A stretch of DNA of 64,000 nt from Adineta vaga (GCA_021613535.1 CP075493.1:16864001-16928000); one strand, 5' to 3'. Positions 1,447 to 49,293 are shown, counted from the first letter of the stretch. Numbers and translations: made by a program. Notes: generated by a model from the letters alone, not told the origin.

Positions 1447-4400
1447 GCCCTGCATCTTTTGCTCAAGAGCGCATCTTTCTTCATGAGCAAGTTCGCTTCT
1501 CGAATGAAGTTGCCATCTACAATCAACTATCAATTCTACGACTTGTTCAAGGTTCATTATCGATCGATCGTTTATTAAAAGCACTTCGATATATAATAAG
1601 CAAACATAATATATTACGATCATCTCTCATTTTTGACAATGAAGATAGTACTTTAAAACAATATGTTACTCAAAATCATCTATCATTCTCATTAGTCAAT
1701 GAACAAACATTTGAAAATGAAAGTGAACTTTTCGATATTATCCATAAAGTCACATTCAATCCAACTTTATTTAATTTGTCTGAAGGCCGAGTGTTTCATT
1801 GTGAGATTATTCGACAACAGAACTTAACTAATGAAAATAATGATAAGGAATTGATTAGAGAATCCGATGTTGTTATACTGGCTTTTCATCATGCAGCATC
1901 TGATCGATCAAGTTTCGCCGTCTTTTTCGAAGATTTGAGTTTTGCTTACAATAATAATAATGACACAACATGGTTTGAAGATGAGGATTCAATACAATAC
2001 ATTGATTATAGTGTACATGAACGTTTAATGGATATGACATTGTCTCGTGAATTTTGGCATTTTCAACTTGACGGTTACAATCCCGAGCGTCCTTTAGCAT
2101 TGCCAGTTGATCGACATCGTTCATCTGCTGATCAACGATCAGGTTTATCTTCTACAACTTACATATCGTTCAGCAAAGAAATTTCGAAATCATTTCTCGA
2201 TTATGCATCTTCACATCAAGTCACACCATTTCAGTTAGGATTGGCTACATTTTATATATTTTTATTCAAGTTAACTCATGGTCAAACTGATCTATGTGTT
2301 ACTTCTGTCAATGCCAATCGATATCGAAGTGAATTACAAAGTCTCATTGGAATGTTTGTTTCAACATTACCATATCGATTTCAGCTGGATGGTAACTGGT
2401 CATTTGATGAAATTGTAAAACGTGTACGAGAAATATGTTTATCAATTCTTGAACATTCTCAATACCCATTACAGCATATGCTCGCCGATTCGCATCTGAA
2501 TCAGCCGAATGTTCCGTTTCTTGAGACAATGCTAGACTTTATTACTTTATCTTCGAATACAAGTCAAATATCTGTTGATGGTGCAGCTCTAGAAGAAGTA
2601 GCGCTAGTACAATCATTCGAAGCAGCTAAGTTTGATTTTTCAATAACATTTATTTATAATCCAGCGTTAGAAGATGATGAACTGTCTTGTTCTTTCGTTT
2701 TTTCTCGTGACATATTCGAAGAAAAAACCATTAAACAAATAGTTTCAAGAATAGAAATACTATTTGAGAAACTTTTTGCAACAAACTCAAATACTTCACC
2801 GATGGACCAATCTGTCACGTCAATTAACAAACTTTCTATTATTTTACCAAGCGAAGTGAATGAAATGCAAACAGTACACTTCTCTAGACTCAAAAATCTT
2901 GTTAACGAAGGTACGTGAACTAATACGAACATGAAAATGAAATTTGATCGGAACTATATTCCACTTACAAAATAGTGGCACGGAAATGAGAATTAATTGC
3001 TTGGTTAACATCGTTATATTAGCAGAAAATAACTGCATTTGTGATCCTGGTCTTTTCGTTACTCTAAAGATTTGAATATGAGCCGTAGCGTTTTGTTCTA
3101 TCTGAAACAGATCGATTTGTTTCAGATAGAACAAAATCAATATATGTGATAGTTTCATGAGTGGACGTGTCATCAAACAGATATTTCATCCCTTCATGAA
3201 AAAGTAATTTAATTCTTGTATCTTATAGGATTAGCATCCTATGCTCAAGCTCGTATTTGGCTTGATGAACAAACTCGTTTCGGTTCTAACAAACCACAAG
3301 TAGCAATCAACAATATGCCATTTCTTTATCGTCTCTCATCCACACATACTTTATCAGTTAAACAATTTTATCAAGCTCTTCAGCTCATTATCACTAAACA
3401 TCAAGCACTTCGAACATCATTGATCTTTGATTCAAACAAGAATCAACTCTTACAACGAGTCAATGACTTGAACGATAGTCACAAACCATTGTTTACGTTT
3501 ACAGAAAGTACTTTTCAAACAAATGAACAACTCGATGAGATAATGTATGACGAGAAACGCAATTCTCAATATTTCGATCTTACTCAAGGACTTGTCTTTC
3601 GATGTCATCTCATTTACTACAAACAAATATCTTCAAATGATCTTCTTTGTGATAAAGATGTTATTATTTTCAATTTTCATCATGCATTGTTCGATTTTCC
3701 ATCGATGGATATCTTTCTTCGTGATCTCAATCAAGCTTATACAACAAATCAACTATCAACTGATGATAACATGAATCTACGATATCTTGACTGTAATGAT
3801 CAATATTCTTCTTTTCTATTTGATTTCATCTATGTGTTTTTGTTCAACTATTTAGACGCTGTTATCGAACAAGAAATGTCAATGACTGGTGCAAGTCTAT
3901 TTTGGCAAGATGTTCTTTATGATTGTAATTTTGATCGATCTTTACCATTACCATTTGATCGACATCGTCTTGCTAATGAATATAATACTGGTCGTGGAAC
4001 ATCTGTCTCTTTTGATTTTGGTGAAGATCTTTCACAAGCATTTCTTAATTATTCGTTATTGTACAATATTAACCTTGAATATCTGATACTTTCTTGTTAT
4101 TATGCTTTCTTATTCAAATTATCAAATGGAGAAAAAGATCTTTCTATTGGAATTAACATTGATACTCGATCTAGAGATGAACTTAAATCGTTGATCGGAA
4201 TATTCCAAAATGTCATTCCATTACGATGTCAATTAGATCCTCATTGGTCTTTTCATCAATTAATTATATACTCTCAAGAGATAATGAGAAATAGTTTGAA
4301 ATATTCATATTTTCCTCTTCAACGCATTCTCAATCAACATGTCAATAGTTCAAGACCTGCATTTCTTGATATATTCTTTGAATTTCAATCAAATCAAAAC

Positions 4401-6734
4401 AAATCTTGTAAGAATGAGATTATCATTGATGATGTTCATCTCTATCCTATTTCCTATTCGAATCAAATCAATAGAAAGGAAGTTGTGAATAAATATGATT
4501 TCTCTCTTATTATTCAACATGATTCGAATATTAATCAACTATCATGTACAATTAATGCATCACTTGATCTATTCAATGAAAACACAATTGACAAAAGTAC
4601 ACAACGATTTCATTTTATGTTGCAACAATTATTTAGATCTACCGATGAATGGATGAAGAAACCAATCTATGAATTATCATTCATATTGTCAAATGAAAGA
4701 CTACTCGTGGAATCTTTGAATAACACACAAATATTATTTCCTTCTTCCACTTGTATACATCATGAATTTGTTTTTCAGGCAATGAATTATTCACAAAAAC
4801 TAGCAATTGAACTTGATGAACAATCTCTAACTTATTCTGAACTTTTACATTATGTTCAATTGTTTGCTATTGATTTAATAGACAATCATCATATCATTCC
4901 AGGTGACATTGTTTGTCAATGTGTAGAACGAAGTCTATCGATGGTAGGTTGATTGAAAAGTAATTTTTACTAAAATCGATCGAATATTGATCTTGATTAG
5001 GTAATTGGTATAATGGCAATCGAGATGAGTGGTGGTATCTATTGTCCATTATCACCTCGAGATCCACCACATCGTTTGTGTGCACTTGTTCAACAAATTC
5101 AGAGTTGTCTTGTTCTTGTTCATTGGTCGACAAGAACTAAATTCAACGATAATATAATTTCACTTGACATCAGCTCGATGATGGCTGACATTGATATCAA
5201 ATGTGACATTGATGTCGATCGACTCTCAAATGTGCTAGTCACATCGAACAGCGTATCCTACACTATTTTTACAAGTGGTTCAACTGGAACACCGAAAGCT
5301 GTTAGTAGTGATGCATAGATGTAACGAGAATAAAAGCAATATATAACTTGTTTTAGGTTCAAGTTCGACATTGTAATTTTATTGAATTCATATACTCTAT
5401 GATTTATATTGATACATTCACGGTGAAGGATGTGATTGGACAAATGTCACGATGTTCATTTGACGTTCACGTTCAAGATATAATGGGCTCATTGATGGTC
5501 GGAGCTACTCTAGTTATGTTCCGTCCTAGAGGAAATATCGATTTGGACTATCTATTCGAGACAATAAAACGCAAACAAATTACGTTTATGCATACTACAC
5601 CAAGTCTACTTTACAGCTTCTTTAGTTTCCTGCAAGAAAATAACCATATCAAAGCACTTGAATGTTTCCGATCAGTTAGCAGTGGTGGTACGTAACTGTA
5701 CAATAAGCTTGTATAGTGAGGATACCTTTTTATATTTCTAGGTGAACCTTGTTCTGTCAATTTAGTTAATTTAATTAAATATAATTCTATAGACGACTGC
5801 CGCATATGGAATATTTATGGTCCAGCTGAAGTAACCGTAGTATCTACTTTCTTTATTGTAGATGGAACAAGTGAGGCGGAAAGCATTCCCATGGGTGTAC
5901 CACTTGCTAATTATCAATGTGTGGTTCTGAACGAATTTCTCCAAACTGTTACTATTGGTCAAGAAGGTGAACTAGTTGTTGGAGGAGTTGGAGTCTTTGC
6001 AGGATATCTTGGACGTGATGATTTGACACAGAAAGCACTGATTGAGATCGACGGGGAATTATTCTATCGAACAGGTGATCTTGTTCGAATGGATAAGAAA
6101 GGTCTTTTATATTATCAAGGAAGAAAAGATCATCAAGTCAAACTTCATGGACAACGAATTGAATTAGGAGAAATTGAGCGATGTTTACTTCAGACATCTG
6201 TTACAGCTTGTGTTGTCATCAAATGGGGCGACGACCATTTGGTTGCTTATGTTCAAAGTTCTACTATTAGTGAAAACAATTTACGTGATCATTGTCAATC
6301 TCACTTACCACCTCACTTGATTCCATCGATGTTCATCATTCTTGATAAATTGCCATTGAACAGAAATGGAAAAGTTGATCGAAAACTTCTTCCAGTACCT
6401 AGCTTTGCATCAGTCTCAGTTGCCAACAACGAAGATTCGTATATAGAACCAACTAACGATTTGGAGACGATCATTCACTCAATTTGGTGTGAACTTTTTC
6501 AACGCTCTCATATTTCGACGAATACAAGTTTCTTCAGCATTGGTGGACATTCTCTTCTCCTCTTACAATTATATCATCATTACAAGAAGATTTTTGATCT
6601 GCATACAAACAGTATCAGTTTAGTACAACTAACCGAACATCTTACGATCGCCGAACATGCACAATTCATAAATCATTCCATAGATTGTATACGATGGGAT
6701 GCATCATCCTGGTTCTTATTGTCTTTGAATCCTG
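1447..6734 (+). CDS. Non-ribosomal peptide synthetase, C-C-A-T domains, spliced; 5' end probably upstream (exon starts at an AG acceptor at 1446)
   Basis: Exons 1447-2910, 3229-3792, 3856-4943, 5001-5300, 5357-5687 and 5742-6734 join in frame via GT-AG introns. C domains: ASFAQ..FHHAASD and ASYAQ..FHHALFD. A domain: YTIFTSGSTGTPKAV, FDVHV, NIYGPAE, YRTGD, GRKDHQVKLHGQRIELGEIE, NGKVDR. T domain: FFSIGGHSLL. Confidence 0.93.
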
Positions 6735-8462
6735 GTAAGTCGTTTTTGATGGCCGAGGTATTACGTTCATTATATTTTGTGTTAATGATGATGAAGATAA
6801 CATCTATACAAAATGATGATAATCGATTGTATATTCCCAACTTGCAAACCTATCTTCTACCAAGCATGTGCTTCATGAAGAGTTGTTAAGAATCTATTAA
6901 TAATTTCTAAAATAGTTCCATTTTCCAGATTCTCTGACCAAGGATGTACTTTTATTGATGCAGCTGTTAATAATTTACTGATCTCTTGACTAGAAGTATG
7001 ACAGTTCTCAGATTTTGGTTCAGGTCATGTGAGCAAATAAACTATTATAACAGCTCGAACCAGATCGCATGAACTGTTAAAGCAGTTTTTTCCATCTGAT
7101 CTGTTCGAACAGTTCGCGAGATCTAACGGCGATCGGACATTTCGCCTCCTACATTTCAAACATCCATGTATGCCACCGATGTTGGAAATTGTCATTTTAA
7201 TTCGCCCAGACATATTCGTAAAAATGTTTTAGAAGCATTCACTTCTTTCAATGATTGTTACCTTATCTTAAGTGTAAGATTTTTTGCACAGAAACGGATG
7301 TTTGCAATGGAAACTTGAGACAAAACTTTTAATTACCGATCTATTCTGCATCATTACTCCTGCATTGACCGGTTTTCAAAACTGATCTATTTGTACTGTG
7401 TGAACGATGCGAATAATTGTTTCGAGCTTATTCAACTTTCTATTACTAGGAAGTTAATGAGTATTCATCAAGATTTTAGAGTTTGACAATAAGTGGGTAC
7501 TTTTAATCGAAGATTTGAATCCTAACAAACGATTAAAAACTAACATATGTCTTTGCTAAAAATGCAAACATTCATCCGTTTTATATTTTCATATACTACT
7601 GATTTCATACAGTTTTCGCGATGAAATCTATCTTCAATGATATGCGCATAAACTGTGCGAGGATAGGCAAAATCAAAGACAGTCGGTAGCTAGCAGAGAA
7701 ATGATAAATATACACCCTGGAGACTACATTGACGACATTAAATGAATAGACAAAAAGTATAATTTTACGCATGACATTATAAACGATCAAATCCTATGTA
7801 AACTTCAGAATCCTAATCAGTATAGAACGTGTCACTAGTAATACAAAATCGAGACAAGTGCGAAGATTCTTATTAAAGATAAACAAGAGATTCGTACTGA
7901 AATACAACAGCATCGCTTTAGTAATAGTGACAACCTCATATCTTATTGAGGTTAATTGTTTGATCATATACCTGCTCTAAAACAGATTTCACAATTGAGG
8001 ATGTTTCCTTGTAAACTATGTAGTTCCTCGCGGTTAACACTATATTGACAATATTCCGAGAGAAACTGAAAGCTTGTTAAGAGCGCATTTGTTCTAAGAC
8101 TTTCGAGGGAACCACCTAAATTGATTAATCAATTTTGAGCTCATACTTTAGGCATAATTAGCGGATCCCGAAAATAGAATAACCTAAAGAAGAGTTGCGT
8201 CCATGAGCCTGTAGAGTTCAGTTTTAACAATTCTATCGAATTTTTGTCATGTAATACCATTTTACGTACGAAACCAAATGCACGAGTTTCGATCTGAAAT
8301 TTCGCTGATGAAGAGGTCCAAGCACCACTAGAATACTGTGAAAGTTCGAAACAAAACGAATACATTCTTTTCAAGATATCGCGTTTTTAGTAGCTGACTG
8401 TTTCTGGAACAGAATTAAGAAACGTAGTATTTATTGCGAAGTCAATATCTTGAGAAGAATGT

Positions 8463-9414
8463 GGTGACTGGACAATTCGTCGCGGACAATTCGTCGCAGA
8501 CAATTCGTCGCACAGACAATTCGTCGTCGGACAATTCGTCGCATAATTAGTTAATTGTAACAAGATTAACATAATATAAAGGTAGAGAGAGAGAGAGAGA
8601 GAGAGATAAACATTGTATAAGGGTCATTACGTTCGAAAAAGAAACAATAATTTTAAACAAATGTACAATACGTAACGAAACAAACTTAACAGAAATTAAC
8701 TCAAAACTTTACACTTCTGAATAAAACAGTACCTGGATTGTTTTGTTTACGGAAGATGGATTCTCTAAGGGATTTTTAGGGCTTCATAATTACGAATAGA
8801 TATTCTTGATAATTTATTATGTATACTATAAAGGAGCAGTAGTAACTTAAACCGTTTTTGTATCGAGAATCTCAATTTGTAGGTAATACTCATTTTACAT
8901 AGCGATCATTGTTGCGAGCTAATGTGTATTTCATAAAAGAAATCTTTGGATTTTCACTAACTAAAATAAACATCCTAAAAATTAAATATTCACTAAATGA
9001 ACTATGATAAAAATCATTCGCTAAGTTGTAGAATGTTTTTGTATAGTAGAAGTTTGCTTGAATCTGTTTGATTCATAATGTTGAAATATAACCTAACATT
9101 TCAAACGAAATAAATTTTTTGTCTGACAGTTAACTGAATAACGTTCTCCTCTTAAAACTTTCTTAGAAGTTTTTTTACTATTCAAATTCTGTGTTTTGCT
9201 TTTTGGTACTTTCGAAACATTTTGTATGAAGTTTTCAAGTGAATCCGTATCTTCTTGTCCGCAATACTACTAGAATATTAGGTTGCACTTGGTGTTGGTA
9301 ACAGGACTGTTGTGATAGTGTAGTTATTCTATTAATTGAATTACATATGTAGCTTTGTCAATTAATTATAATATATATGCGACGAATTGTCCGACGACGA
9401 ATTGTCCTAGTGCC
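8463..9414. mobile_element. Non-autonomous TIR transposon (GG...CC ends, MULE/foldback-like) with 8 bp TSD
   Basis: aagaatgt is duplicated at 8455-8462 and 9415-9422; subterminal gacaattcgtcg repeats at the left end (5 copies) and inverted at the right end (2 copies). Confidence 0.8.
8583..8606. repeat. (AG)n microsatellite
   Basis: Direct read of the sequence. Confidence 0.9.
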
Positions 9415-9532
9415 AAGAATGTATTCGTTTTGTTTCGAACTTTCACAGTATTCTAGTGGTGCTTGGACCTCTTCATCAGCGAAATTTCAGATCGAAACTC
9501 GTGCATTTGGTTTCGAACGTAAATCGCGCAAC

Positions 9533-9834
9533 CAAGTATTCTTTTTCTAGGCTGATCTGATATATATATATTGTTTGAAAGAGCATATCGACATACAGTG
9601 CCTACTAGGGGTTTTTTTTTCAAATTAAATTTCTTCGTATTATTATATACAGAAACCTGTATGACTAGATGTTCATTTCTAGGGTTTTATGTGAGTCATT
9701 GAACTTGTGATCTCTCTTTTTCACTCAAAAATTTAGAATTTAAAAAAGGACTCTGGTAGACACTGAATCTTCAGATGCTTTTTCGAACAATATATATATA
9801 TATCAGATGTGCCTAGAAAGATAATTCTTGCTTG
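9533..9834. repeat. Small diverged inverted-repeat element
   Basis: ctagg..atctgatatatatatattgtttgaaa (about 9546-9580) versus tttcgaacaatatatatatatatcagat..cctag (about 9781-9816). Confidence 0.6.
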
Positions 9835-10066
9835 TCAAATGTACTGTTTTAATCTTTGTTTAGTGAATATCTCCCTCAAATGTCCTATTTTTGGGCTGAA
9901 AACTTTACTGTAGTCTCCTCACGTCAGCGCTAACATATCCTCAAAATTTCAGCTCATTTGAATGTGCCTGGACCAAAATCGGTTTTCGAAAGGGGAAGAA
10001 GAGGCCTTAAAGCAATTGTATCTTTAGATTTACTTTTATGTATGATGTTTTTATTCTCTTCATTAG

Positions 10067-11665
10067 ACAACTTAGTCACAGATCAACCACCGTTCTCATC
10101 TGAAATTGGGCTTTATGTTGATCTCAAGAACATTTATGATCTTCCTCAGGATACAACGATCGATATTGAACTACTCGAGAAAATCTATCGTTCAGCGACG
10201 ATTCAAGAAATATATATCATATACATTGCTGATCCAAAATTTAATGAAAATACTAAGTCAAAACAACGACTTGCTGCCGTTATTATTTCCCAAGAAAAAG
10301 AAGCAACTGTGTTGAAAGAACTAGAGACAACTTCAAAGTTAAAACAACTTCACCACTATCAACTTCCATGGATCGTCATGATCGAGAGAGAATCATTGCG
10401 CATCGTGAAAGAATCACGGTTTACATTAACGGAAGATGTGAATCGAGAGATTATTGAAAACAATTATCGGATAAAAATAATGAATATACTGCTTGCCAAT
10501 GAAAATTTTTATAATGAAAATGTTGACATTTGTGCGAATACTACTCAGCAAAAAGAATTAGTGCAATCTTGTTTGTTGATCGAAACCGATAAAATACTCG
10601 ATCCCGCAGTAAAGCCGTTTGTCGGAATAAACAGCAAAAAGAATTCTCACGATATTTTTCTTACTGGATCGACTGACTTTCTTGGTCCTTATCTACTTGA
10701 TGAACTTCTAAGACGAACAGATGCAAACATTTATTGTCTTGTTCGTTCAACAACGTCTGTAGACACATCTCAACCTCGTGTGTTTTATGTTTGCGGCGAT
10801 TTGACTCTTCCTCAATTGGGTCTTGACGATCATCAATACTCGATGCTAGTATCAAAAATCCGTTCAATTTATCATTGTGAAGCAGCCACTAATTTCTACA
10901 AACCATATAATGAACATCGATCGGCCAATGTACTTGGTACCATTGAAGTAATCAAATTGGCATGCTTAGCAAATTGTCGAGTCAACTATATATCGTCGCT
11001 GAATGTCTTGGATAGTAGTGATCACAGTAATGGATATGTACAAAGCAAACAAGTTGCTGAATGTTTGTTGAAACAAGCAAGTGAAAGAGGTCTGTTTGTA
11101 ACCACAATCAGACGAGGTATGTTGTCAAGTCCCTGCCGTCATAAAATAAATTTTAGTCTGAACTGTGTTTGAAATAGGTTACATATCATGGTCTTTATCA
11201 ACAGGTGATTTCAACAAAACAGACTGGTTAACCATCCTACTCTTGGATCTGATTAAGTTCGGTATAGCACCTGAAACTGATTTTACATTCAATATTACGC
11301 CAGTTGATTGCATCAGTAGATCCATTGCAGAGCTGGGCGAATCAGAAAAAACTATCAAAGCAACGATCGATCTTCGTGAAACTCATACAGTTAGTTTTAA
11401 ATCAATATGGACAGAGATCTGCCGACAACGTGGTTTGGATCCTCACTATCTCCATGTGACCGAATGGAGTCAAAGATTGGATAAAGTACTAAAGACGAAC
11501 TCACAATTATTACATGGACTACAACTGTTTTCAAATTCACTGACAGATTCTTTCTCAATAGATACGGCACCTACTGTCGGAACTGAATCTGATCTTAATT
11601 TACCAATATTTGTTGAAAAATTCCTTCAGAATTGTCTACTTTTATCATCTGATTTAGAAAAATAA
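10067..11665 (+). CDS. Terminal thioester-reductase (R, extended SDR) exons preceded by a degenerate adenylation C-terminal subdomain; probably the 3' end of the NRPS
   Basis: Exons 10067-11116 and 11178-11665 (stop TAA). Motifs IFLTGSTDFLGPYLL, GDLTLPQLGL, ANVLGTIEV, GYVQSKQVAE and RRGYI. The phase-1 acceptor at 10066 matches the phase-1 donor at 6735. Confidence 0.8.
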
Positions 11666-14600
11666 CTCTGCTGTCCTTAACTCATTTCATTTTCATCATC
11701 TTATAACTTAGTTATTAACAATACATTTAAATACTAACCATTTTCTTGTCATTAAACGTATATGAATTTGAAAGGCTTGTTTCATTACATTGTATGCATC
11801 AACAAGAGCACATGATTTACAGGCAGAGGAAGAAGACACGATAGATACTACAATATTTATATTAGTATGATATTGTAACAACATGTACCGCCTTCAAATT
11901 ATACTGTAAAAAAAGATTTCATACTAATCGTTAGCTACGAAACCTTCTCTACATTGATCTTTCTTTTGGTTTAGTGAAACACTCTTTTTTAATCATCATA
12001 TTCTAGGTTCCATATTCAGCCACTCCAGAACATATCCTTGAAAGATTTGTTTCGAAACTCGCTTCACACTCGTAAATAATGTTATGGGTGTAGATGAGAG
12101 TGAGTGTTGGACACTCCGCTAAATCTGTTGACATTGATTCTAAACAGTCTAGAAAATAAGATGTAGTTTATAACATATCATCATTTACCTATTTGCCTGC
12201 CGGTCTATTGAAAAGTGGACGTCGGCCGACATAAATAGCCAAATCTTTGCTCTCTGCACGGATATCTTGGCAGTTTTTAATGAATCCTACCAAACCAGTG
12301 ATAGTTTTGTATAAATTTTGCCAAAGGATGAGTGAGTTTACGAAACTAAATACCGTTCTGTGTAATGAAAACGAGATTCATATATTTAGCGGCAGTTCTT
12401 AAGAGATTTGCAACTAATCAGAAATACACGCGTGTATGTTCCTTCTGGATTATAACTGAGACTGGTACTCCCACTTGCGTTGAGTTTTTACAAAGGAAAG
12501 GAAAGTTCTGAATTTTTCAACTCTCGTTTTTGAAAGCAAGAAAAGGAATTTTGAAATGTTTTAACGCTTAACTGCTTGCAAAGTACCAATTACAAACATA
12601 ATTGAGCAATCATTCGTATGACGTTAACTCTAGTACCTCTGCGTTTCTTCTCTGTCCATATTCTATCTTTCTCTGAGGTTGAATCTCAGTTCATTTCCTA
12701 ACGACCATTTATGAAAAGAACGAATTAGAAAGATCAATCTTCTTTTTTTCTGCAATGTATGCGAAATGATCAAATATTTCGAAGGATCAGATTGGATAGA
12801 CGCCTGCATATGCACAAATCTCTTTAGACTAAACAGTTATTGAACATAATAGGTTTCATTTCCTTTCTTTTTGCAAAGGAAATTAGGGAAAATCAGAACG
12901 TTTTTCTTCAGGAAACGAAAAGAATATTTCATAGTAGTCGCGGTTGACTGCTCAATCACATAAGAGATGGGGAGATATGAATATACGTATAGAGTTGACA
13001 TTAGTTTAGCTCAATAAGAGAAAGGATTACATATACATAGGGGAGAAATTGTGCTGATCAGTCAGCAGCACAATACCGACAACATTTTCTGATCTAGCAT
13101 CCTTTTTCACACTTCTTTTTTTTATATCAATAATGTTTGAGTTAGGAGTAAATCTCAATTATTTTGACAGTCTTACACCAACATTAGAAATTCAAAGTTT
13201 TGGAGCAGTTTTCGGCTCGAGATTTTGTATGACGTTTGATTTTGAGACAGTTTTAGGTCTGAGATTTGTTTTTCTCATTTATACTTGAGAACTAGTTACT
13301 TTATTAAGGTAATCTAAATCGATTGGCAGACTAGATGTGATAGCGCTGTGAAAGAGAGGTTATAATTACGTCTCACTAACTATTTATCAACTTGACAGCG
13401 TTCAAAGAGAAAATGAAAACCACCGACAACTCAGCTAGAGACTTTCGAATCAAAGTTCACGAACGGCTGCTCATCATCTTCGAATTCAATTTTTCGGTCC
13501 ACAATTACCATTTAAGGGTTATTCTAGTCGAAATCTATAAAAGGATAACTTTACTTTTTTGTAGAATTATGGATACAACAGAAGGCACGTCAAGCTATGG
13601 TGTTTTGTCAAAAATTCAAAGGTGGTCGTATTAATAAGATTAGTAAAAAGATTATGTCAGTTTGTCAGCTCAATTGTTTTTTCATCCGTCAAGTACAAAC
13701 AAATTTCATCTTTCATGGTATATGTTTCATCGTTTTTCTAGAGAATAAACATTTTCTTATGATGACTATGTTAAGTAACAAGTCGTTCGCTCTGATTCAA
13801 AATGTTTTAGTTGTACTTACTCTCTGCTGGTATCTTCTGATGAGCCCTATCTTCTTTATCTATCTATTACTTCTTGGAAGCAGAATCAAACAGCAAATCC
13901 TAATTTGATACGACTACGTGATTAACTCGCTTACTCATTATGAACGTCTGAAAAGAAAAAGCACTACTAACTTGGTTAAACTGATTGTCGATAACAAACA
14001 TAGTTTAGAGTATGTACCAGCGATTAGTGGGTTTCCAATAACGGTATGTCTGGCATTATTTTACGTTCCTTTCTATTTTCACGCGATGGTATGGTGGTGA
14101 ACACAAGAATTCTTGCGATGGAATATTCTGTTAATGTTTCTTTATGCATTGTTGTGGTGCGACGACACGCTTTATGATAGTCACGGCTGGATCACAAAGC
14201 GTCGTCAATGTGTGTGGTACAGACGATTCTTTAGCAGCCGGTTTAGATAATATGCTCAAATAGTTTGGTACCCGCTCAGTCAATATCTGCCCCATCTACA
14301 TATTCACCATAAATTTAGCATGAAAAATCAATGAGATATTGGTTATATAGGATGGTATCAGTGTGATGGTATCATAGACTTCTTAACTTTTCTTATCACG
14401 TACGAGTGGAATCACAATTGAAACTCTTTTCGATATTTTCACACAGTTTCTACTTCTCATTTCTTGCTTCGCATATATATCAAAGACGTGATATAGAAGT
14501 ATGATCTATTAGCATTGCGTGTATTACTATTTTGTTGTTCGGCTCTCATTGTAGTGAATTCTACAACTGGATTGTGCTTTGAAAGCCACACTTTTCATCA

Positions 14601-29469: not shown

Positions 29470-29826
29470 GATCACACAAGTTACACTATATGAGAAAACC
29501 AAGCGTATCTAACTGTTTTCGTCGATATAGCTGAAGTTCGCAACAAAACATTTAGCATATTCTGAATCAATGCAAAATGTCTGCCCTATACTAACTATTT
29601 TCTCAAAAACTGATTGTTCTGTCTCTCAGGTCCGCTTTTTTTGAAAACTACATTGAAGTTCGCTCAAGGTAAACTTAAAAAATTAATTTTTGAGAAAATA
29701 GCTAGTATAGTGCGGACATTTTGCATTGATTCAGAATATGCTAAATGTTTTGTTGCGAACTTCAGCTATATCGACGAAAACAGTTAGATACGCTTGGTTT
29801 TCTCATATAGTGTAACTTGTGTGATC
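29470..29826. repeat. Foldback/MITE: about 140 bp near-perfect inverted arms with a roughly 77 bp spacer
   Basis: gatcacacaagttacac...ttctcaaaaa (29470-29609) versus 29687-29826. Confidence 0.9.
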
Positions 29827-35808: not shown

Positions 35809-36006
35809 CCTTTCCTTCAAATTGCCATCACTATTATAAGGAATACTGAAGGCAAGTGTCACCAATATAAATACGAGTGAAAATGATCCACTGACGTGCG
35901 TGCATATGGCTACACATTAATTATTGTCGTTATCATTTTTCATTTGTAAACAAGAAAAGTAAGAAGAAAAACAGAGATAAATAGTTTGCGTACTCTCCTT
36001 TTTTCA

Positions 36007-36680
36007 ACCGATTCTCACAGCTAGAAGACGACTTAAGAACGAACATCTCTTGGCGTCCCCTTCCGATTTCGGGAATTCCCTCGTATTAAGATAGCACACA
36101 ATGACCTATTAACAAGCTCAAAAAGATATGAGTTGATATTCTGTTGTAACAGAAACATCGACTTTTCAAAAGATCACATTTTTTTAAATCCCTGAGGGGA
36201 ATCTGAGGTTTGCAAAAAACAAAATTTTTATTTTAAATCTGATATTTTGACAAAGTGTGAGCGTAAGCTCAAGAGAGGGAAAGAGCGGAATCGTGATTCC
36301 CGGATTCCCATGGATCCTCTCTGATATTTCTCAAAATTCATAGAGATCTTGAAATTCTACAATTTAGGAGCCCCATCGAATCCGTCGGATTTTACAGAAT
36401 TCCGCTCTTTCCCTCTTGAGCTTAGGCTCACACTTTGACAAAATATCAGATTTAAAATCAAAACTTTATTTTTCTCCAAACCTCAGGTCTCCCAGAGGGG
36501 TTTCAAAATGTGTGATCTATTGAAAAGTCGATATTTCTGTTACAACAGAATATCAGCTCAATCCTTTTAAACTTGTTAATAGGTCATTACGTGTTGTCAA
36601 AATAGAAAGAAATTCCCGAAATTTGAAGGGGGACACAAAAGATGTTCGTTTGTAAGTCGTTTTCAAGCTGTGGGAATCGG
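36007..36680. repeat. Diverged foldback element (about 285 bp arms)
   Basis: ccgattctcacagct...gaaagagcggaat versus attccgctctttccc...agctgtgggaatcgg. Confidence 0.85.
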
Positions 36681-36756
36681 GTGTGGGTATAAATCATAAG
36701 ACTCTCATTCACCCTCACCGACATCCTTTCTTTAATAACGACATGGAATTAGTAAT

Positions 36757-37503
36757 TTATCTTGTTTTAGTTGGCGCTCGTATTTTTCCTTCCATTTCGA
36801 CCATGTTTTCGTTGAGAAATCGCTGGTATGAAATGAAGAAGTCTGATCGTGGTTATTAGGTGTTACTTCATTATAACGACGCCCAACTATTTTTCATCGC
36901 TAATAGCGACGTGCGATCGATTTGATTTTAGTGATGATTTATAGCTAATTTTCACCCTGAATAACGACGGAATAGTGATTTTTGTGTCAAATAATGTTTA
37001 TAAGCTATTCTGGAACCCTAATAACGAGGACATTGGATTTTCAAAGTATAATAAAGGGTTTATAAATGTTTTTCAAGTGATGTTTACAATTTGTAAAACA
37101 ACTCTAAATATTTTTTGGCAGACCTCTGTCGTTGATCTGCATTTCTTTTTGCAAAAACTATCGATATCAAACAGTTGAGACAATTAATTATTGAAATTAA
37201 AACTGAACAAAATGCATTGTCGTCGTTATTAGGATTCCAAAATAACTTATAAATATTATTTGATACAAAAACCACTATTCCGTCGTTATTCAGCGTGAAA
37301 ATTAGCTGGGCGTCGCTATAATGAAGTAACACCTAAGAACGACGATCAGACTTCTTCATTTTATATCGGTGATTTCTCTACGAAAACATGGACGAAACAG
37401 AATAAAAATACATCGTTATAAAGAGCGTCATCGGAAGATCCCCAAAGCATAAAATAATTAGGAATCGGTCTTGAAAAATACGAGCGCCAACTAAAATAAG
37501 ATA
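36757..37503. repeat. Diverged foldback element with aataacgac repeats
   Basis: ttagttggcgctcgtattttt / aaaaatacgagcgccaactaa; gaagaagtctgatcg / cgatcagacttcttc; ctgaataacgacggaatagtg / cactattccgtcgttattcag. Confidence 0.8.
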
Positions 37504-37807: not shown

Positions 37808-38755
37808 ATGACGAACAGAAAGTCAACAGAAAAAAATGATGAAAAGAATGTCAATGACACCAATAATAAGTTCGAATATCCATCTTTTCTATTGTGTCCA
37901 CCTACGATGTATTCAGAACGAATTCCTAATAATATTTGGATGAAAAATCTGACAGATGAACAACGTGCACCTGACTATAAAGTGGCTATGGAGCAATTTA
38001 TTGATTTATATAAAGTACTTGCTTCGAAATCTTTATTATACTTACTACCATCTCCAGATGATGTTCCTCTTCAAGATCTAGTGTTCACGGCAAATCTTGG
38101 TATAGTGTTAAGTCACTTACCTAATAGAAAAGTGGCAATTGTATCTAATTTTACTTCGGAACCAAGAAGAGGAGAAACTGAATTTGGTCTGAAATTCTTC
38201 AACACATTGGGATATGAGACATTTGTTCCCGAGACCAAATTCGAAGGTGAAGCTGACTTGAAATATTTGTATGACAATATTTATGTTGGAGGATATGGTA
38301 TGCGTTCTGAATTGGAAACATACAAGTGGATGGAGAAAATGTTTGACATGAAAATTATTTGTTTGAAAATGGGAGATGAATATTTGTACCATCTTGATTG
38401 TACCGTATTTCCACTGACCAGAAGCAAAGTATTAGTATGTACATCACTATATAGTGATGAGGAATTAAAGAATTTGGAAACATTTGCAGAAATTATTGCA
38501 ATTGATTATGAGTCAGCTCTTTCTGGTATATGTAACTCTGTTCGTGTTGGGAATGTTATTTTTAATTCTAATAATTTTAAACTATTCGAACCAGACACTA
38601 AAGATTTTAATAATGAAGTATTGAAAAATAGATGTTTAGAAAAAATCGCTGCCGACAATGGTTTGGAAGTTGAATTTATGGAACTGGATGAATATACAAA
38701 AAGTGGAGCTCTTTTGTCCTGTATGGTTTTGCATATGAATAGGAATAATTACTAA
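37808..38755 (+). CDS. Pentein (amidinotransferase/guanidino-hydrolase) superfamily protein, ArgZ/AgrE arginine-dihydrolase-like, intronless
   Basis: 315 aa; LLCPP..NNIWM, QDLVFTANLG, RRGE, FEGEAD, YHLDCTVFPL and KSGALLSCMVL (Cys-His-Glu triad). Confidence 0.85.
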   Translation: MTNRKSTEKNDEKNVNDTNNKFEYPSFLLCPPTMYSERIPNNIWMKNLTDEQRAPDYKVAMEQFIDLYKVLASKSLLYLLPSPDDVPLQDLVFTANLGIVLSHLPNRKVAIVSNFTSEPRRGETEFGLKFFNTLGYETFVPETKFEGEADLKYLYDNIYVGGYGMRSELETYKWMEKMFDMKIICLKMGDEYLYHLDCTVFPLTRSKVLVCTSLYSDEELKNLETFAEIIAIDYESALSGICNSVRVGNVIFNSNNFKLFEPDTKDFNNEVLKNRCLEKIAADNGLEVEFMELDEYTKSGALLSCMVLHMNRNNY

Positions 38756-41384: not shown

Positions 41385-41494
41385 TTGTAAAAAATAAACG
41401 TAGAATACAGAACCCTTCACAAGGGTTTATTAGTTACTTATATCCTTTCACAAACCCTTTTGAAGGGTTCTGTATTCTACGTTTATTTTTTACA
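41385..41494. repeat. Short hairpin MITE
   Basis: tgtaaaaaataaacgtagaatacagaacccttca / tgaagggttctgtattctacgtttattttttaca. Confidence 0.85.
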
Positions 41495-41872: not shown

Positions 41873-44800
41873 ATGAGCGAAGCGCAGCCTCTGTTAAGTC
41901 GAACCAATAAGCAGTTTAGCAGGGATGACAATAATCACAGTGATCATCAGCTTTCAGCCAATGGGTAAGATTAAATAGAGAATTAACTTCGTGACAGATA
42001 TCATGAATTTACGATTCTTTGTAGTTTTACTGATTGGCGTCGGTGTTTCAGTGGTACAGAATCTGATAACAAAAGTAGAAAAGATGATACTGAACCTGAC
42101 GCTAACGATACAATGATTGGTGTTTTCCATTTAGTAAGTACATTTGGACGAAATACTTTCTTATTAGTCCAATTGATTTATCTGTAGTTTCGATTTGCAA
42201 ATCGCATTGATCGTTTCTTGATGTTTATGGCGGTGTGTGGTATTATGGTAGCCGCTGTTGGAATTCTCGTTACTTTCTTTCTTTTCGGTCGAGTCATGGG
42301 AATTTTTGCTACTGAATCATTTAGTGTTGATTGTCAACATGCACACCAAAATTCGACGTCAATCATAGATTATATAACTTTATTGTCAACACCAGCTACC
42401 CCAAGGTCGTCATTTCGAATCAAAGTTATGACCATAGTTCATTGGTTATTAAGTAAGCCAAATAAATGTAATGATTTAATTTAGCAGAATAATAATATTT
42501 GCTTTTCTCCTACGTACATATAGTTATTGGTATTGTCAAGGTTTTATGCTTTTTCTTGGCATATTTCATTTGGACAATCGCTTTGAAACGACAGATAAGT
42601 CGTATGAGTATTTACCTCTTTCGGTCGCTTTTACAACGTGTAAGTCAAACATTATTTTCCACATACAAAAATTTATTCTATAAGCTCAGTCAAAAGATGA
42701 CCCAGGATGATTGTTACTCTCAGTATTTTTGGAATATCTTTTCCAAATCTCAATGTGTAGACCTGTACTTTGTGAAACACGATCTGAAAGAGAGTGTTGA
42801 AGTGTTTAAGGGTAGAAACCTGGATCCGTCCCGTCTCCCCTCCCCCACAGTAGTCACCGACAGCCTGACAACCCCATCACAACGTTATCGGCAGACACAA
42901 TGAGCTCATGTTGAAGGTGCGGACGCGGTTGAGGTTAGCTTATTTACACTTCAAGCTTACCTACACTCACCTTCATTCACTTACACTCTCTATTCATTTA
43001 TCTATGAAAATAATCACAGATAATTCAGATTTTGGCAATAATGCAAACGCAGATCAATTATCGATCAGAGATCTCCGTTCCAATACTAGAAAACAGAGTT
43101 ATCGTGTTTCACATTTTTAATCTCGCAAGGAATTGCGCTGAAAGCTTTTTTTTATAAGATTCGTCTTTAAATGCTCTACGAAAGCGGTTTTTATATTAAC
43201 GTCGATAACAACCGTTAATTTTTGACAAGTGATGAGGAGCTACCAGGATTTATTTATTTCATATGGATTTATTCTCAGACTCATCCTCAGCCTACACCCT
43301 CACTTATACTTCTATCCCACACCCTTAGCCTGCACCCTTACCTAACACCCTTGCCAACTTTCGAGATGAGATTGAATTCTCTTCTGCAACCGATTTTTCA
43401 CCTTTTCGATTGCTCTTCTCGTTCGAATAATAATTGGCTATCCTGGTGGACTCGAGAGTTGTAAAAAAGCCCGTGTCATGGATAATTTTGCACCACCTTT
43501 TAATTGTAAGAAGACAGAGAGCATCACTAAGATCACGAAATATTTTCGTTGGACACACGCCTTTTTTGTACTTTGAAAAAAACGAACAAAATTTGATCAA
43601 GATGTCGTAGAAATACTGAGGGTAACATTTATCCTGGGTCACCCGTTATAAACTCAAATATATCTAAAAAAGTCGCCATTCTTTCGCATTAAACTTTTTT
43701 CAAACGTGTGATCAAAACATAATTGTTTTGAAATTTCATATCCATTTATTATCATTATTTTTTCGCGAAAAACTCTATTTAAATATGTAATAGCTTTATT
43801 GTAATGCAGGTAATGACATTCATTATTCATATGATTAAGAAGTAGAAAGATTTTGTGCCGTATGGTAGAAATCAAATTTTCCCTTTCATTCTCTAGAACA
43901 TGTCGTATTTGGATACAAATCCAACTAGTCAATTCAGTACTAAATTATTTGAGTGAGTTATCGAGGTATTTTTTGTCTCGCAATCTATCTAATTCAATAC
44001 TGTTGTAGCAATATTGCAATTATTGAGCAAGGTATTGGTTTTGAATTTTTAATGCTAATTGAAATGGCTTTCGGGATCATCGGTGACATAATCTTATGTT
44101 TCGTTGTCAACTGGCAATTGACTTTGATCATGATATCCATTGTACCTGTTGTAATTACTAGTTCATTCATTTTTTCTAAGGTATGAATTATCATTATTCA
44201 TTCAATTGATCTTGTATGATTTGTTGCAGCTTATCGCTCGCGAAGCAATGAACGTGTCAGAAACACACGCAAAAGCCACACAAATCGTTCAAGAAGTATT
44301 CAGTTCTATTCGAACTGTTCTTTCATTCAATGGCAGTAAATTTGAGCAGAAACGGTAAAAAATAGATAGAAATTGGTTAACTATAAAATATGTTGCTCTC
44401 TATATTAAATTTAGATACGAAAGAGAGCTGCATCCAACTCGATGGAATAGTATTCGACAAGGTGCCATATATGGCGTTTTTGTCGGTTGCATGTCGCTTA
44501 TAACATATCTTGTTTATTCAGTTGGTTTCATCTCTGGTTCTCTTCTGATGTATCATGGAATTCATAATAAATTGAGTATCAGTGATATGATTGTCGTAAG
44601 TAATGCATGTCGTAAGTCAATAAGGAAATAGTTACATGATTGCTATTTTAATACAGATTGTCTATATATTTGTGCAAGACATCTCTTGCTTCGATTTTAT
44701 TGGTCCCTTCTTGCAATCATTTTCAGAAGCTCGAGGTGCAGCAGTATCAGTATTTCGACTGATTGACGAGGTAAATATGAGTAAATAAAGGTCTTGCATT

Positions 44801-47800
44801 GACTAAAACATCTCTTCTTTGTTTACTTTACAAAGGCTCAAGACGCAAGTGTGAATGAGAGGGATGTATGGGAGAAGACTGCATCAGATGAACAATCAAC
44901 TTATCATGTCGACGGTGACATTGAATTTGCTAATGTCAACTTTATATATCCATCTCGAAAAGATACGCCAGTTCTGCGTGATCTCTCTCTAATTGCTCGT
45001 ACAGGTCAGACAACCGCTCTCGTTGGTCCAAGTGGATGTGGTAAATCTCTATATATAAAGAAGAATGTTTGTCTTTTCTTTGTATAGTTGTTCACTCTGA
45101 TAGCCAGCGTCACCAACCTTTCTCTGGTACTCCTCTAGGCCAAGAGGAAGATCGAGAAAAGGTTGGCACGACTGAAGCGAGTGGGAGTTAGATGAAATTG
45201 CACCTAGTTAAAAAAATTGTAACTGTTACCGATTTTTCAGAAACTTTGGAAAATTATGTAGTATTTTCAGAGTATTCATCTACTAATAACTTTTCGCGTT
45301 GGGTGTGGATCTGGCGCATAGAAATGCGCATAAGTAAAAAGAAAGACACTCACTTTCAACTGCCTAGTTGGGTTCTTAACCTAGAGATGGAGTGAAGTTG
45401 AATTAGTCTGGACTAGAGTTCGAATGAGATTTTTAAAATCGACACAGATTTAGAGCGAAGTCGGTGTAGTACATAATCGGAATAGTCAATCTCTGGTACG
45501 CACACCGGGACATGTTATCATGATAGATGGACAAATTTCAAGTACGTCTCCGTCTATATCTCTTGTCGCTTTCTATCATGTGAAATTTTCAGTAAGAAAG
45601 TTTCGTGACCAACATCGGGTACTTTCACTATTTTTTTCTAAAATAAAGATGTTTGTTATTTAGTTCATTGGTTTCTATATTTCATTCATAGGAAAGAGCA
45701 CATGTATGTCACTTCTTCTTCGTCACTATGACACTTCATCTGGTCGAATTACTATAAATGGTCGATCGATTGCAGACTACAATCTCAACCAACTTCGACA
45801 AAGCATTGGAGTTGTTAGTCAAGAACCAGTATGTTTATATTTTCTTTTAATGCCTCTTTCTCTCTCGCTACCACAATACTGCGATAGGTTTTGTTTGGTA
45901 TGAGCATTTATGAAAACATTCGTTTTGGTAGAATAAATGCAACAAGAGCAGAAATTGAAGAAGCAGCTCAACAAGCAAATGCCCATAATTTCATCATGCA
46001 ACTGCCTGATGTTTGCAATTAATATATATTTATCTTTATCTATAAATATATAATATTATTATTGTTTAGAAATATGAAACATCGGTTGGTGAATGTGGTG
46101 TACAATTGAGCGGTGGTGAAAAACAACGTATAGCATTAGCTCGTGCTCTTCTTAAACAGCCTACATTACTCCTATTGGATGAAGCAACAAGCTCACTTGA
46201 TACTATTAGCGAAAATATTGTCCAAGAAGCACTCGATCGAGCATGCAAAGGTAGAAAATTTCTTTCTTCAATTAACTTACTGATATATGACTGTTTGTAG
46301 GTCGTACTACTATTGTAATTGCTCATCGTTTAACTACGATTCAAAATGCTAATTACGTATATGTACTAGACAATGGTGGTGTTATTGAACAAGGCACACA
46401 TAATACATTGATGACTAAAGAAGGTGGTAAATATCAAGATATGGTTAAAAGACAACAGATAGGGAGAATAAATGCTACTAAAGATGACACATTGAATATG
46501 GAAAAGGTGATAGAAGAAGATAAAGAACAAATATGTATGTTGACATAACAGTAATAATCTTGATCTGTTCTAAGTTCTTTTTCTTAAATAGTGGAAAGGT
46601 CTCGTTTATTCAGCGACAGTCGAGCTGTGAATACAGATCACGTATAAATATGTCTCCAATTATTTTTCTAAATCTTTATCAATAATTGTTTTTCTAGAAA
46701 AATCCAACATTATCAAGTCGGCAATCCATTTTTACAAGAGTCTTGTCGATGAACAGTCCAGAATGGATCACTATCTTAATCGGCTGTATAGCTTGTCTAA
46801 TAATTGGAGCTGTTCAACCAATTTTTGCAGTTCTACTTACCAAGATGCTTAGCGTGAGTGATGCGTTTATATAAACATCGTTGAAAAACGATAGCGATTA
46901 TATATCTTTTAACGTCATCTTATTTATTATAAAGGCATTCAACGATTGTGTAAACCCTATAATACATCGTCAAGTATGGATTTCCAGTTTATACTTTTTA
47001 CTTTTGGGTATTGCTGTATGGTTTCTTCATTTTCTACAGGTAAGAATATTTATTCGAAACTTGATAGATAATCTTTTTACTTTTTTGTACAGTTTACGGC
47101 TTTTTCGATATCAGGAGCTAAATTAACTGAACGTATTCGTTTAAAAGCTTTTTCATGTCTTCTTCGCCAGGAAATTGCTTATTTCGATCGATCTGAAAAT
47201 AGTTGTGGTGCAATTTGTGCTCTTCTTTCTTCTAACGCGTCAGTCATCCAAGAAATAAGTGGTACAAGATTAGCAGTCATCTGTGAAGCTTTCGCACTGG
47301 TTTGCTTTGGTCTTATTTTTGGCTTTTATTTAAATTGGCATTTAATTATAATCAGTTTCATTCCTATTTTTATATTTGCTATTATAAGCTACCTACAGAT
47401 ACGCTCAGCTTCATGGTTGAAAGAACAATCTGATATTATTTTCGGACGTGCAAGCTCGGTAAGATCAGGTTTTTGCTTTAAAAAGAATTAATTTATCATG
47501 TACTGTTTAATAAACCGACCGCTCTAAATGCATTTTATCTTTCCGCTCATAGTTTGCTATTGAAGTCATTCACAATATGCGTACAGTAAAACAGTTATCA
47601 GTAGAAAAAGAAGTTTTACAACGATATTCACAATTCATTTATCAAATGTTTTCGTTAGTCTCTCGAATATTATTCTTAAATAAATCTTCAGTCAAATTTG
47701 TTTTTTTATAGAATTTCTTGGAAACCTACTCTACTATCTGCACTGACATATAGTTTTCTTTGTTCAATGGATTCGTTTATTATTGCACTGCTATGTTGGT

Positions 47801-49293
47801 GGGCTGTTAATCTCATTGAAAAGAATGAACTAGCGTTGAAAGATAGTATAATGTACTTCAGACGACAGCTGATAATCTGTATACAATGTTTTGTTGTGTT
47901 TCTATCTTCCTAGGGTTTTTGCTTTTGCTATTTTCTCGACACAATCACTACAAATCGTCGGAATGCTGTGAGATTATCACTTTCTCATTCGTCCTCAATT
48001 CTGTTGCCTTTCTTTTAGGTCTCAACGTATTGGTGCATCCTTAATGGCTGCTAAGAATTTTTTTGATTTATTCGATCGAACACCAACTATTGATAATTCT
48101 TCCATAAAAGGGCAAGAGTTGGTAAGAAAACGTTAGAGGGAAATTATTTTCTTTGTTTGTGCATTTACATTTGACATATAAAATGGATCATTTAGGACGA
48201 TTTTCGTGGTAGTATAGAATTCGATCAAGTCGAATTTGCCTATCCAGCTCGACCGACACATATTGTTCTTAACAAACTTCACTTGAATATCAAACCAGGT
48301 TAGAAAAAAAGTTCTCCCTTAAACCAATAGTTTTTCTTATTTTATTTCCTGATAAGGTCAACGTATAGCACTTGTTGGTATGTTTGAATAAGATTACACC
48401 TTTTAATCATTAATTACCCAACATAATCTATTTAGGTATATCTGGATGTGGAAAATCAACTATTATCCAATTGTTAGAGCGTTTCTATGATGCCACACAT
48501 GGTAAACTGGTTAGTATTTATCCGAATACAGTTTAAGTAATCATATGGAGGCTGTCAATTTTATTTAGCTTCTTGATGGTATTGATATTCGTGAATTGAA
48601 TATACAATGGATTCGTTCTTCTTTCGGTCTTGTCAGTCAAGAGCCAATTTTATTCGATCTAACAATTTCTGAAAATATAGCATATGGATTAGAAAATGTG
48701 CCAATGGAAGATATTATTAATGCCGCAGCTAAAGCCAACATACATGATTTTATTCAACAATTGCCTCAGGTAAGACAATATAAGATATCATTAGATGTCT
48801 AAAAATATTATTGTGTGATATGTTTAGGGCTATGAAACAAAAGTAGGGATGAAGGGTAGTTTTTTGTCAGGTGGTGAAAAACAACGTATTGCCATTGCTC
48901 GAGTTCTTCTTCGTCGACCCAAAGTATTGCTTTTAGATGAAGCCACAAGCGCCATGGATTCGCACAATGAACAAGTAAGTTGAATGTCCTGTTTATTTAT
49001 GAAGGTTTAAGGATGACACTTTATGTTTATTTTACTTCGAAATAGTAAAAATTAAGTACTAGCCTTACGAAGATTTTTTTCAATTATAGATTATACAACA
49101 AGCTCTTGAACATGCTCAAACAGAAGATCCTAGTCGAACATCACTTATTATTGCTCATCGTCTTTCAACTATTCAGTCATGTGATTTAATTTGTGTGCTT
49201 GATAAGGGACGTATCTTGGAAACGGGTACTCACACAGAATTGATTGAACAACGTGGAGCTTATTACAGAATGCTTGCTCAAGATAATTTATAA
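41873..49293 (+). CDS. Full-length ABCB (P-glycoprotein/MDR-type) ABC exporter, many exons
   Basis: ATG at 41873, LFRFANRID in exons 2/3. NBD1: GPSGCG|[30 protein letters not shown]2: [31 protein letters not shown]. Stop TAA at 49291-49293; short GT-AG introns throughout. Confidence 0.9.
42681..43648 (-). mobile_element. Degenerate Tc1/mariner element in an ABCB intron
   Basis: Inverted ends tgacccaggat..tgttac.ctcagtattt (about 42698 and 43611-43641); frameshifted HTH-like text [31 protein letters not shown]. Confidence 0.65.

Follow-up and report, generated by a model that had tools for sequence, protein, structure and literature searches.

A possible arginine-to-polyamine module in the neighbourhood of a nonribosomal peptide synthetase gene of the bdelloid rotifer Adineta vaga

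Introduction

If antibiotic synthesis is encoded in animal genomes, the strongest candidates are the nonribosomal peptide synthetase (NRPS) loci of bdelloids, whose descriptions have to date been confined almost entirely to the megasynthases. At one such locus of Adineta vaga the 3' end of an NRPS gene shares a stretch of 48 kb with genes for an ornithine decarboxylase (ODC), a flavin monooxygenase of the type I Baeyer-Villiger monooxygenase (BVMO) family, a pentein-type enzyme predicted to modify guanidino groups, and an ABCB transporter. Do these genes form one biosynthetic unit with the NRPS, do some of them work together, or have they come to lie side by side by chance? We addressed this question in a window of 64,000 nucleotides, i.e. 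bases 16,864,001-16,928,000 of A. vaga Av20 Chrom_1 (CP075493.1; 18,146,847 bp); positions given below are those of this window, and adding 16,864,000 converts them to positions in the record. The window is subtelomere-proximal, with about 1.2 Mb separating it from the chromosome end, has a G+C content of about 33% throughout and contains no N.

An earlier note, made from the raw sequence, had read the stretch as a candidate biosynthetic cluster consisting of an NRPS with terminal reductase, an Arg/Orn decarboxylase, a BVMO, a guanidino hydrolase and an ABCB exporter. All five gene types were found again with Pfam, PDB searches and NCBI gene calls, and the underlying domain calls, including those of the ArgZ-like pentein and the terminal reductase, proved right. 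Here we describe these genes and their relatives elsewhere, and we tentatively propose that pentein and decarboxylase constitute an arginine-to-polyamine module.

Results

Pentein and decarboxylase genes recur as neighbours

Among the genes of the window, only the pairing of pentein and decarboxylase has comparative support for joint work, as it recurs in bacteria and in Rotaria. The partner differs from lineage to lineage: it is a pyruvoyl-type decarboxylase in bacteria, a bacterial-like pyridoxal phosphate (PLP) enzyme in Rotaria, and in Adineta an animal-type ODC whose gene is located 19 kb from the pentein.

The bacterial part of this comparison covers 80 pentein loci (L009-L088; pentein at about 10001-10950 in each), of which up to 10 kb per side were inspected. 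Directly upstream of the pentein, 75 of the 80 loci, distributed over at least eight phyla, carry a gene of the PS_Dcarbxylase family (about 221 aa). An exporter with ABC_membrane and ABC_tran domains is present within 1.5 kb of the pentein in 25 loci, an ODC-family gene is found nearby in two, and weak adenylation-type matches occur in seven. Condensation domains, reductase domains and BVMOs were found in none of the 80. Some actinomycetes have a PAD_porph or an ODC-like gene added to the operon formed by the PS_Dcarbxylase-like gene and the pentein.

In three assemblies of Rotaria magnacalcarata (L002:7540-10939, L003 and L004) the pentein gene is located 1.1 kb from a divergently transcribed gene for a fold-III PLP decarboxylase. 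This decarboxylase was considered as an orthologue of the ODC in the window and rejected, being about 28% identical to it and closest to bacterial Lys/Orn decarboxylases. No NRPS, BVMO or ABCB gene was present within 10 kb of the pentein on these contigs, and no remnant of a PS_Dcarbxylase-like gene was detected beside the rotifer pentein, either in the window or in L002-L004. Contigs of Rotaria that carry a true orthologue of the ODC showed no NRPS, BVMO, pentein or ABCB gene within about 10 kb; for the 77% identical orthologue, the absence of a pentein refers to the 10 kb seen on its upstream side. A 315-aa gene upstream of the Rotaria ODC was examined as a possible PQ-loop or pentein homologue and dismissed for want of any similarity.

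How often an ODC would lie this close to a given gene by chance can be estimated roughly. Since only about seven genes of the published A. vaga gene set carry the GO term 'ornithine decarboxylase activity', an ODC-family gene is expected within 20 kb of a given gene with a probability of the order of 10^-3.

An ArgZ-like pentein

The pentein is encoded by one unbroken open reading frame (ORF), as is the BVMO. The ORF had no Pfam match. In phmmer searches of the PDB, however, the protein matched the arginine dihydrolase domains of AgrE and ArgZ with E values of 1e-20 to 1e-22 (AgrE, 2.7e-22). An AlphaFold2 (AF2) model computed with 16 homologues reached a pLDDT of 80, and the Foldseek search with this model returned ArgZ (6jv0) at the top (E 1e-19, TMt 0.86), followed by DDAH; amidinotransferases and agmatine deiminase also matched. 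His195, Asp197 and Cys305 are invariant across 16 pentein sequences. On the predicted fold and the catalytic Cys, His and acidic residue, the protein is assigned to the pentein superfamily.

With ArgZ (Sll1336) and AgrE (Alr4995) of cyanobacteria the protein has in common the fold (TM 0.86), two residues of the YHLD motif (His and Asp), and a C-terminal Cys. It differs from them in several respects: identity is only about 25%, the fused ornithine cyclodeaminase domain is absent, and the protein falls into another family, with members of about 320 aa, which is loosely covered by PF19420 (10 of 16 members) and which in bacteria is encoded in an operon with a PS_Dcarbxylase-like gene.

Sequences from Actinomycetota, Verrucomicrobiota, Gemmatimonadota, Acidobacteriota, Pseudomonadota and other phyla are 50-55% identical to the pentein, whereas one R. 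magnacalcarata protein and several metagenome proteins reach 64-77%. Nine bdelloid-like penteins form one clade against 80 bacterial sequences (SH-aLRT 100). The pentein, a single-copy gene, is thus of bacterial ancestry. A metagenome scan with the pentein yielded two short loci only.

The decarboxylase is part of a PQ-loop::ODC fusion

Database searches with the NRPS, ODC, PQ-loop and ABCB sequences were run exon by exon, i.e. without joined spliced proteins. The region 17283-18521 on the minus strand matches both Pfam families of fold-III PLP decarboxylases, PF02784 and PF00278. An in-frame stop had made this gene a candidate pseudogene; this was rejected, as the stop falls inside a 45-nt intron with GT..AG ends (17800-17756). 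For the two ODC exons the best matches were the ODCs of human, mouse and trypanosome (E 2e-56 and 7e-25); identity to animal ODCs is about 45%, and the lysine motif FYAVK, the substrate-site Cys-Asp in GPTCDS, EPGR and DIGGGF can all be read. Orthologues that are 65-80% identical occur in Rotaria and on rotifer-like metagenome contigs. By its sequence affinities, the decarboxylase is a native ODC of eukaryotic or animal type rather than a foreign gene.

The earlier identification as an Arg/Orn decarboxylase is confirmed in so far as the enzyme is an ODC, but what had been seen were the two last exons of a larger gene, a 750-aa PQ-loop::ODC fusion. Its four exons of 781, 262, 737 and 470 nt add up to 2250 nt, which by this arithmetic on the coordinates is exactly 750 codons and equals the length of the NCBI product. 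A 333-aa ORF at 22887-21886 was considered as a separate orphan gene; this was rejected, the ORF being better explained as exon 1 of the fusion. Its homologues of about 250 aa make up 14 clusters; PF04193 is matched by 8 of 13 aligned members (best E 3.8e-24), and the family profile weakly matches cystinosin and SemiSWEET. The PQ-loop part of the window itself has no direct Pfam match; it shows a single FIPQ motif, and its first loop is degenerate.

The fusion is also suggested by relatives. Four PQ-loop homologues come from contigs of 14409, 14964, 5535 and 6869 bp, sizes identical to those of contigs with ODC homologues. On two rotifer-like contigs, L092 (1787-8972) and L093 (10001-11973), the PQ-loop ORF lies upstream of the ODC exons on the same strand. 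The end of the linker exon, '...DESDESIA', followed by a consensus donor site, is common to the window, L092 and L093, and the codon divided by the splice, which is AG|A in the window and CG|T in L093 (intron of 57 nt), is continued without loss of frame in the ODC exon. On L093, a 449-kb metagenome contig with 12x coverage, the ODC part at 11013-11973 contains an in-frame stop and close-set frame changes; it is either a decaying copy or affected by long-read indel errors.

The ODC part resembles animal ODC in identity and motifs, and the N-terminal part belongs to a PF04193-matching family like the PQ-loop transporters of the cystinosin/PQLC2 type; unlike in these known systems, both are exons of one gene here. 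We found no paper in the literature that describes a fusion of PQ-loop and ODC.

The NRPS 3' end belongs to Cluster 1.8

The scaffold-forming core enzyme, an NRPS, is present at the locus and has been published. It is part of 'Cluster 1.8' (region1.8, Chrom_1 16813488..16888582; Suppl. Data 9 in Nowell et al. 2024, Nat Commun 15:5787), whose entry estimates the length at 10,088 aa and notes '1 frameshift' and, as additional domains, Nitro_FMN and thioester_redct (Nowell et al. 2024). The pieces that fall into the window are listed there as Chrom_1_23436, 23438 and 23442 (Nowell et al. 2024, Suppl. Data 9), with coding sequences at 16865386-16866918, 16867216-16868952 and 16869891-16870889 and TD at 16873958-16875172 (Nowell et al. 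2024). Because the first of the listed ORF pieces starts at 16,824,053, some 40 kb ahead of the window, the latter holds only the last module; 8.5 kb separate the end of the previous module from the ATG at 1386. The start of the NRPS at position 1447, as assumed in the earlier note, was accordingly not borne out. The published locus and the NRPS in the window agree in foreign origin, presence of introns and subtelomere-type setting. The NRPS is horizontally acquired and intron-bearing.

The module consists of two condensation (C) domains, an adenylation (A) domain and a carrier (T) domain, followed at a distance by a reductase (R) domain. Condensation-type ORFs at 1386-2915 and 3216-4949 match Pfam with E values of 2e-50 and 7e-40 and are 32% identical to each other; AMP-binding, AMP-binding_C and PP-binding are carried by ORFs within 5001-6886. 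HHxxxD is kept in both C domains, and the T domain has GGHSL. No annotated product is on record for the first ORF. In the window portion of Cluster 1.8 we found no frameshift, and the listed Nitro_FMN domain was not found inside the window.

The R domain is encoded by ORFs at 9934-11169 and 11162-11662, and TIGR01746 positions 2-197 and 191-318 correspond to its first and second exon, respectively. A frameshift at this place was ruled out, the break being explained by a 61-nt intron (11117-11177) that was read directly. The catalytic YVQSK is intact. The NAD(P) motif is atypical, reading TGSTDFLG with Asp in place of the second Gly (10654-10680); this motif search was done on the two exon translations placed end to end, and the motif lies fully in the first exon.

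Between T domain and R-domain ORF, the stretch 6886-9934 has no Pfam match. A degenerate NRPS module hidden in it was considered and rejected, as tblastn with the C, A and T exons of the window found nothing. The open frame of about 230 aa upstream of the R domain (9934-10650) has no family match either, and a single-sequence AF2 model of this region had a pLDDT of 33 and was unusable. It could be a degenerate remnant of an adenylation C-terminal or carrier domain, or a new linker domain.

Monooxygenase, transporter and repeats

The best NCBIfam match of the BVMO-like protein is PtlE (E 1e-82), under the equivalog cut-off. Like type I BVMOs such as cyclohexanone monooxygenase and PtlE, it has the typical length, two Rossmann motifs (GxGxxG) and the GGxWxxxxYPGxxxD motif, which reads GGTWHWNRYPGARCD. 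It differs from them in the score below cut-off and in the fingerprint FxGxxxHxxxW[P/D], which reads FTGNIYSTSKWP (31930-31965, residues 167-178) with Ser for His. Ser is found at this position in 13 of 120 homologues, including its own Adineta subclade, and His is kept in 95. The replacement may alter BVMO activity.

Bacterial matches to the BVMO are 57-59% identical. Per-gene trees had been named in the earlier note as a check; in addition to the single bdelloid clade of penteins described above, they revealed for the BVMO a branch with 100 support that splits named bdelloid from named bacterial sequences. A. vaga has at least five paralogues of this multi-copy bdelloid family. The BVMO is of bacterial ancestry and was acquired separately from the pentein.

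For the ABCB gene, the NCBI product comprises two ABC_membrane and two ABC_tran domains, in agreement with the exon-wise Pfam result. Its largest exon, which encodes the second transmembrane domain (TMD), has its best matches in human ABCB4 and ABCB1 (E 2e-26). The similarity to the ABC gene often found after the pentein in bacteria is generic and restricted to the nucleotide-binding domain (NBD). By these matches the transporter is of animal type, not of foreign origin.

The spacers between the genes are 3-10 kb long and filled with repeats. The pogo-type transposase gene has its ORFs split over several frames. Most of the spacer between BVMO and pentein is occupied by foldback repeats, with a palindrome at 34339-35808 (619-nt arms, 99%) and nested smaller ones at 36005-37408; within 34339-37408 NCBI called no gene, and the ORFs had no Pfam match. 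A further palindrome at 59763-61417 has 648-nt arms that are 100% complementary, and smaller ones are located at 29470-29826 and 62814-63701. The palindromes may be genuine foldback elements or may have arisen as artefacts during assembly. A JmjC-domain ORF at 54870-55940 on the plus strand, distantly KDM4-like and of ordinary animal type, marks the end of the enzyme-rich stretch. Searches of Pfam with 30 further intergenic ORFs gave no convincing family match. Coordinates of all features are compiled in Table 1.

Table 1. Features of the analysed window of A. vaga Chrom_1 with their positions and the basis of their assignment.
Feature	Position	Strand	Basis
NRPS tail, C-C-A-T plus R	1386-11662	+	Pfam, NCBIfam, splice-site reading
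Last C-C-A-T module of NRPS 'Cluster 1.8'	1386-6886	+	Pfam: Condensation (two), AMP-binding, AMP-binding_C, PP-binding
NRPS exons	1386-2910, 3229-4943, 5001-5300, 5357-5687, 5742-about 6886	+	
NRPS introns	2911-3228, 4944-5000, 5301-5356, 5688-5741	+	GT..AG ends, frame kept (4/4, junctions read)
MITE-like (miniature inverted-repeat transposable element) element, 1.26 kb, 109-nt terminal inverted repeats (99% complementary), inside the T-to-R gap	8261-9523		Repeat search
Unassigned region of about 230 aa, then thioester reductase (R/TD)	9934-11665	+	NAD_binding_4 E 1e-33; TIGR01746
PQ-loop::linker::ODC fusion, 750 codons	17283-22887	-	NCBI call of 750 aa with ODC domains; splice sites read directly
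Fusion exons	22887-22107 (PQ-loop-like, seven transmembrane segments), 21581-21320 (linker), 18537-17801 and 17755-17286 (ODC); stop 17285-17283	-	
Degenerate pogo/Tigger-type transposase gene	27067-28842	-	CENP-B_N E 1.6e-10; weak HTH_Tnp_Tc5; NCBI call of 440 aa
Flavin monooxygenase, type I BVMO family, 543 aa, single exon	30833-32464	-	Pfam Pyr_redox_3, FMO-like
Foldback/palindromic repeats	34339-37408		Repeat search
Pentein (guanidino-group-modifying), 315 aa, single exon	37808-38755	+	PDB phmmer, AF2 and Foldseek
ABCB1/ABCB4-type full transporter, many exons, 1311 aa, TMD-NBD-TMD-NBD	41873-49293	+	NCBI call, exon-wise Pfam

Discussion

The five gene types at this locus are all present and apparently intact, and they are of mixed descent. 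Next to the NRPS, the neighbourhood is composed of two native genes (the PQ-loop::ODC fusion and the ABCB1-type pump), two separately acquired genes of bacterial type (BVMO and pentein) and transposon debris. The view that the stretch is built from foreign-type genes thus holds for three of the five, i.e. NRPS, BVMO and pentein, and fails for ODC and ABCB transporter, which are animal-type by their closest human matches. Likewise, of the idea of a biosynthetic cluster the core NRPS module stands, but its neighbours were not found to be conserved or transferred together with it, neither in the 80 bacterial loci nor on the Rotaria contigs. Since C domain, R domain and BVMO are absent from all bacterial pentein loci, transfer of the gene set as a block is unsupported. 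Synteny, proposed earlier as a check, gave the same picture: the gene order is not shared by the Rotaria contigs, where ODC orthologue and pentein are on separate contigs.

Our working model, which we put forward tentatively and with rather less than even confidence, is that of an NRPS 3' end with a loose 38-kb neighbourhood in which pentein and ODC fusion act as a working unit for the conversion of arginine to polyamine. Judging from its fold, its catalytic residues and its closeness to ArgZ, the pentein would hydrolyse the guanidino group of its substrate, presumably arginine or a closely similar compound, and thereby produce ornithine. The membrane-anchored ODC fusion, whose catalytic motifs are intact, would then decarboxylate ornithine to putrescine. 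It is tempting to speculate that transport of the cationic substrate, to the enzyme or away from it, is the task of the PQ-loop part, which possibly also organizes the route at the membrane. Such a two-step route from arginine to putrescine is the most economical one because the closest characterized relatives of the pentein make ornithine, which is the substrate of ODC. NRPS, BVMO and ABCB transporter may be coupled to this amine module in a single pathway, and no test that was run supported such coupling.

Several observations weigh against the model. The pentein scores 101.3 bits against the NCBIfam model for ArgZ/AgrE (NF052232), whose cut-off is 450, and it is also below the cut-off for DDAH. 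In A. vaga the 19 kb that separate pentein and ODC contain the BVMO, a transposon and palindromes. The decarboxylase next to the Rotaria pentein is not orthologous to the ODC of the window, and the true Rotaria orthologues (77% and 69% identity) reside on contigs other than those of the pentein, with a retrotransposon and TPR genes as neighbours. Similarly, no pentein was called near the PQ-loop and ODC pair on L092 and L093. Finally, the analogy between bacteria and rotifers is one of function only because the bacterial partner is pyruvoyl-type and not a PLP enzyme.

Alternatively, the genes may have no functional linkage, foreign genes and transposons having come to rest beside native genes by chance in a subtelomere-proximal landing zone. 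We take this to be a serious possibility, if a somewhat doubtful one, and the caution of the earlier note in this respect was justified. NRPS clusters and foreign genes of bdelloids are reported to be concentrated in dynamic subtelomeric regions rich in transposable elements, and the window contains pogo-type, MITE-like and foldback repeats. The three foreign genes have differing histories, one belonging to an NRPS clade, one to a multi-copy BVMO family and one being a single-copy pentein. Gene order is not common to the examined Rotaria contigs, and the genes past 49 kb, e.g. that of the KDM4-like JmjC protein, are ordinary. What chance arrival does not easily account for is the recurrence of pentein and decarboxylase in 75 of 80 bacterial loci, at 1.1 kb in Rotaria and at 19 kb in A. 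vaga, and the fact that all genes are intact despite the repeat load.

At the other extreme, the locus could be a chimeric cluster in which the diamine made by pentein and ODC is joined to the R-released aldehyde of Cluster 1.8, tailored by the BVMO and exported by the ABCB pump. All parts are apparently intact within 48 kb, and there is precedent for the transporter: ABCB1-type pumps together with a P450 flank another bdelloid NRPS-polyketide synthase cluster, and pumps, P450 and cluster are jointly induced when fungi attack (Nowell et al. 2024). An ABC exporter is also frequent in the bacterial pentein operon. It is suggestive that a second A. vaga BVMO paralogue (77%) is located about 50 kb from the NRPS of Cluster 1.9 and that the A. 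steineri orthologue of this paralogue lies 0.8 kb from a condensation-domain fragment. With at least five BVMO paralogues in A. vaga, however, and a type of region that is rich in NRPS and foreign genes, a BVMO within 20 kb of an NRPS is not surprising. The absence of C domain, R domain and BVMO from the 80 bacterial loci, and of NRPS, BVMO and ABCB genes from the Rotaria contigs with ODC orthologue or pentein, likewise argues against such a cluster. Moreover, 3 kb that show no coding signal (6886-9934) and the 230 unassigned residues lie between the T domain and the R domain with its atypical NAD(P) motif, the BVMO is devoid of the fingerprint His, and the genes are set apart by long repeat-filled spacers. 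The published antiSMASH region ends at window position 24582, and the text of the paper names no decarboxylase, monooxygenase or accessory enzyme (Nowell et al. 2024). Taken together, these points make a chimeric cluster unlikely. More improbable still is a scenario in which the pentein lost its pyruvoyl partner on transfer, was re-partnered with host decarboxylases (in Adineta the ODC anchored by its PQ-loop part, in Rotaria a different PLP decarboxylase) and, with the host ABCB pump and the foreign BVMO, feeds a diamine into the reductively released product of Cluster 1.8.

Our study adds to the published description of Cluster 1.8, which does not discuss the BVMO, the pentein, the ABCB gene or the PQ-loop::ODC model reported here (Nowell et al. 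2024). Two of the arrangements encountered are apparently undescribed, namely the PQ-loop::ODC fusion protein that is conserved on several rotifer-like contigs, and the bacterial operon of PS-decarboxylase-like gene and pentein, which is found in at least eight phyla. If the neighbours turn out to be co-regulated with Cluster 1.8, the arginine-to-polyamine module and the genes around it would indicate that an animal can wire foreign and native genes into a multi-enzyme pathway. If they are not co-regulated, the locus would be a clear example of gene content that mimics a cluster in subtelomeric DNA rich in horizontal gene transfer.

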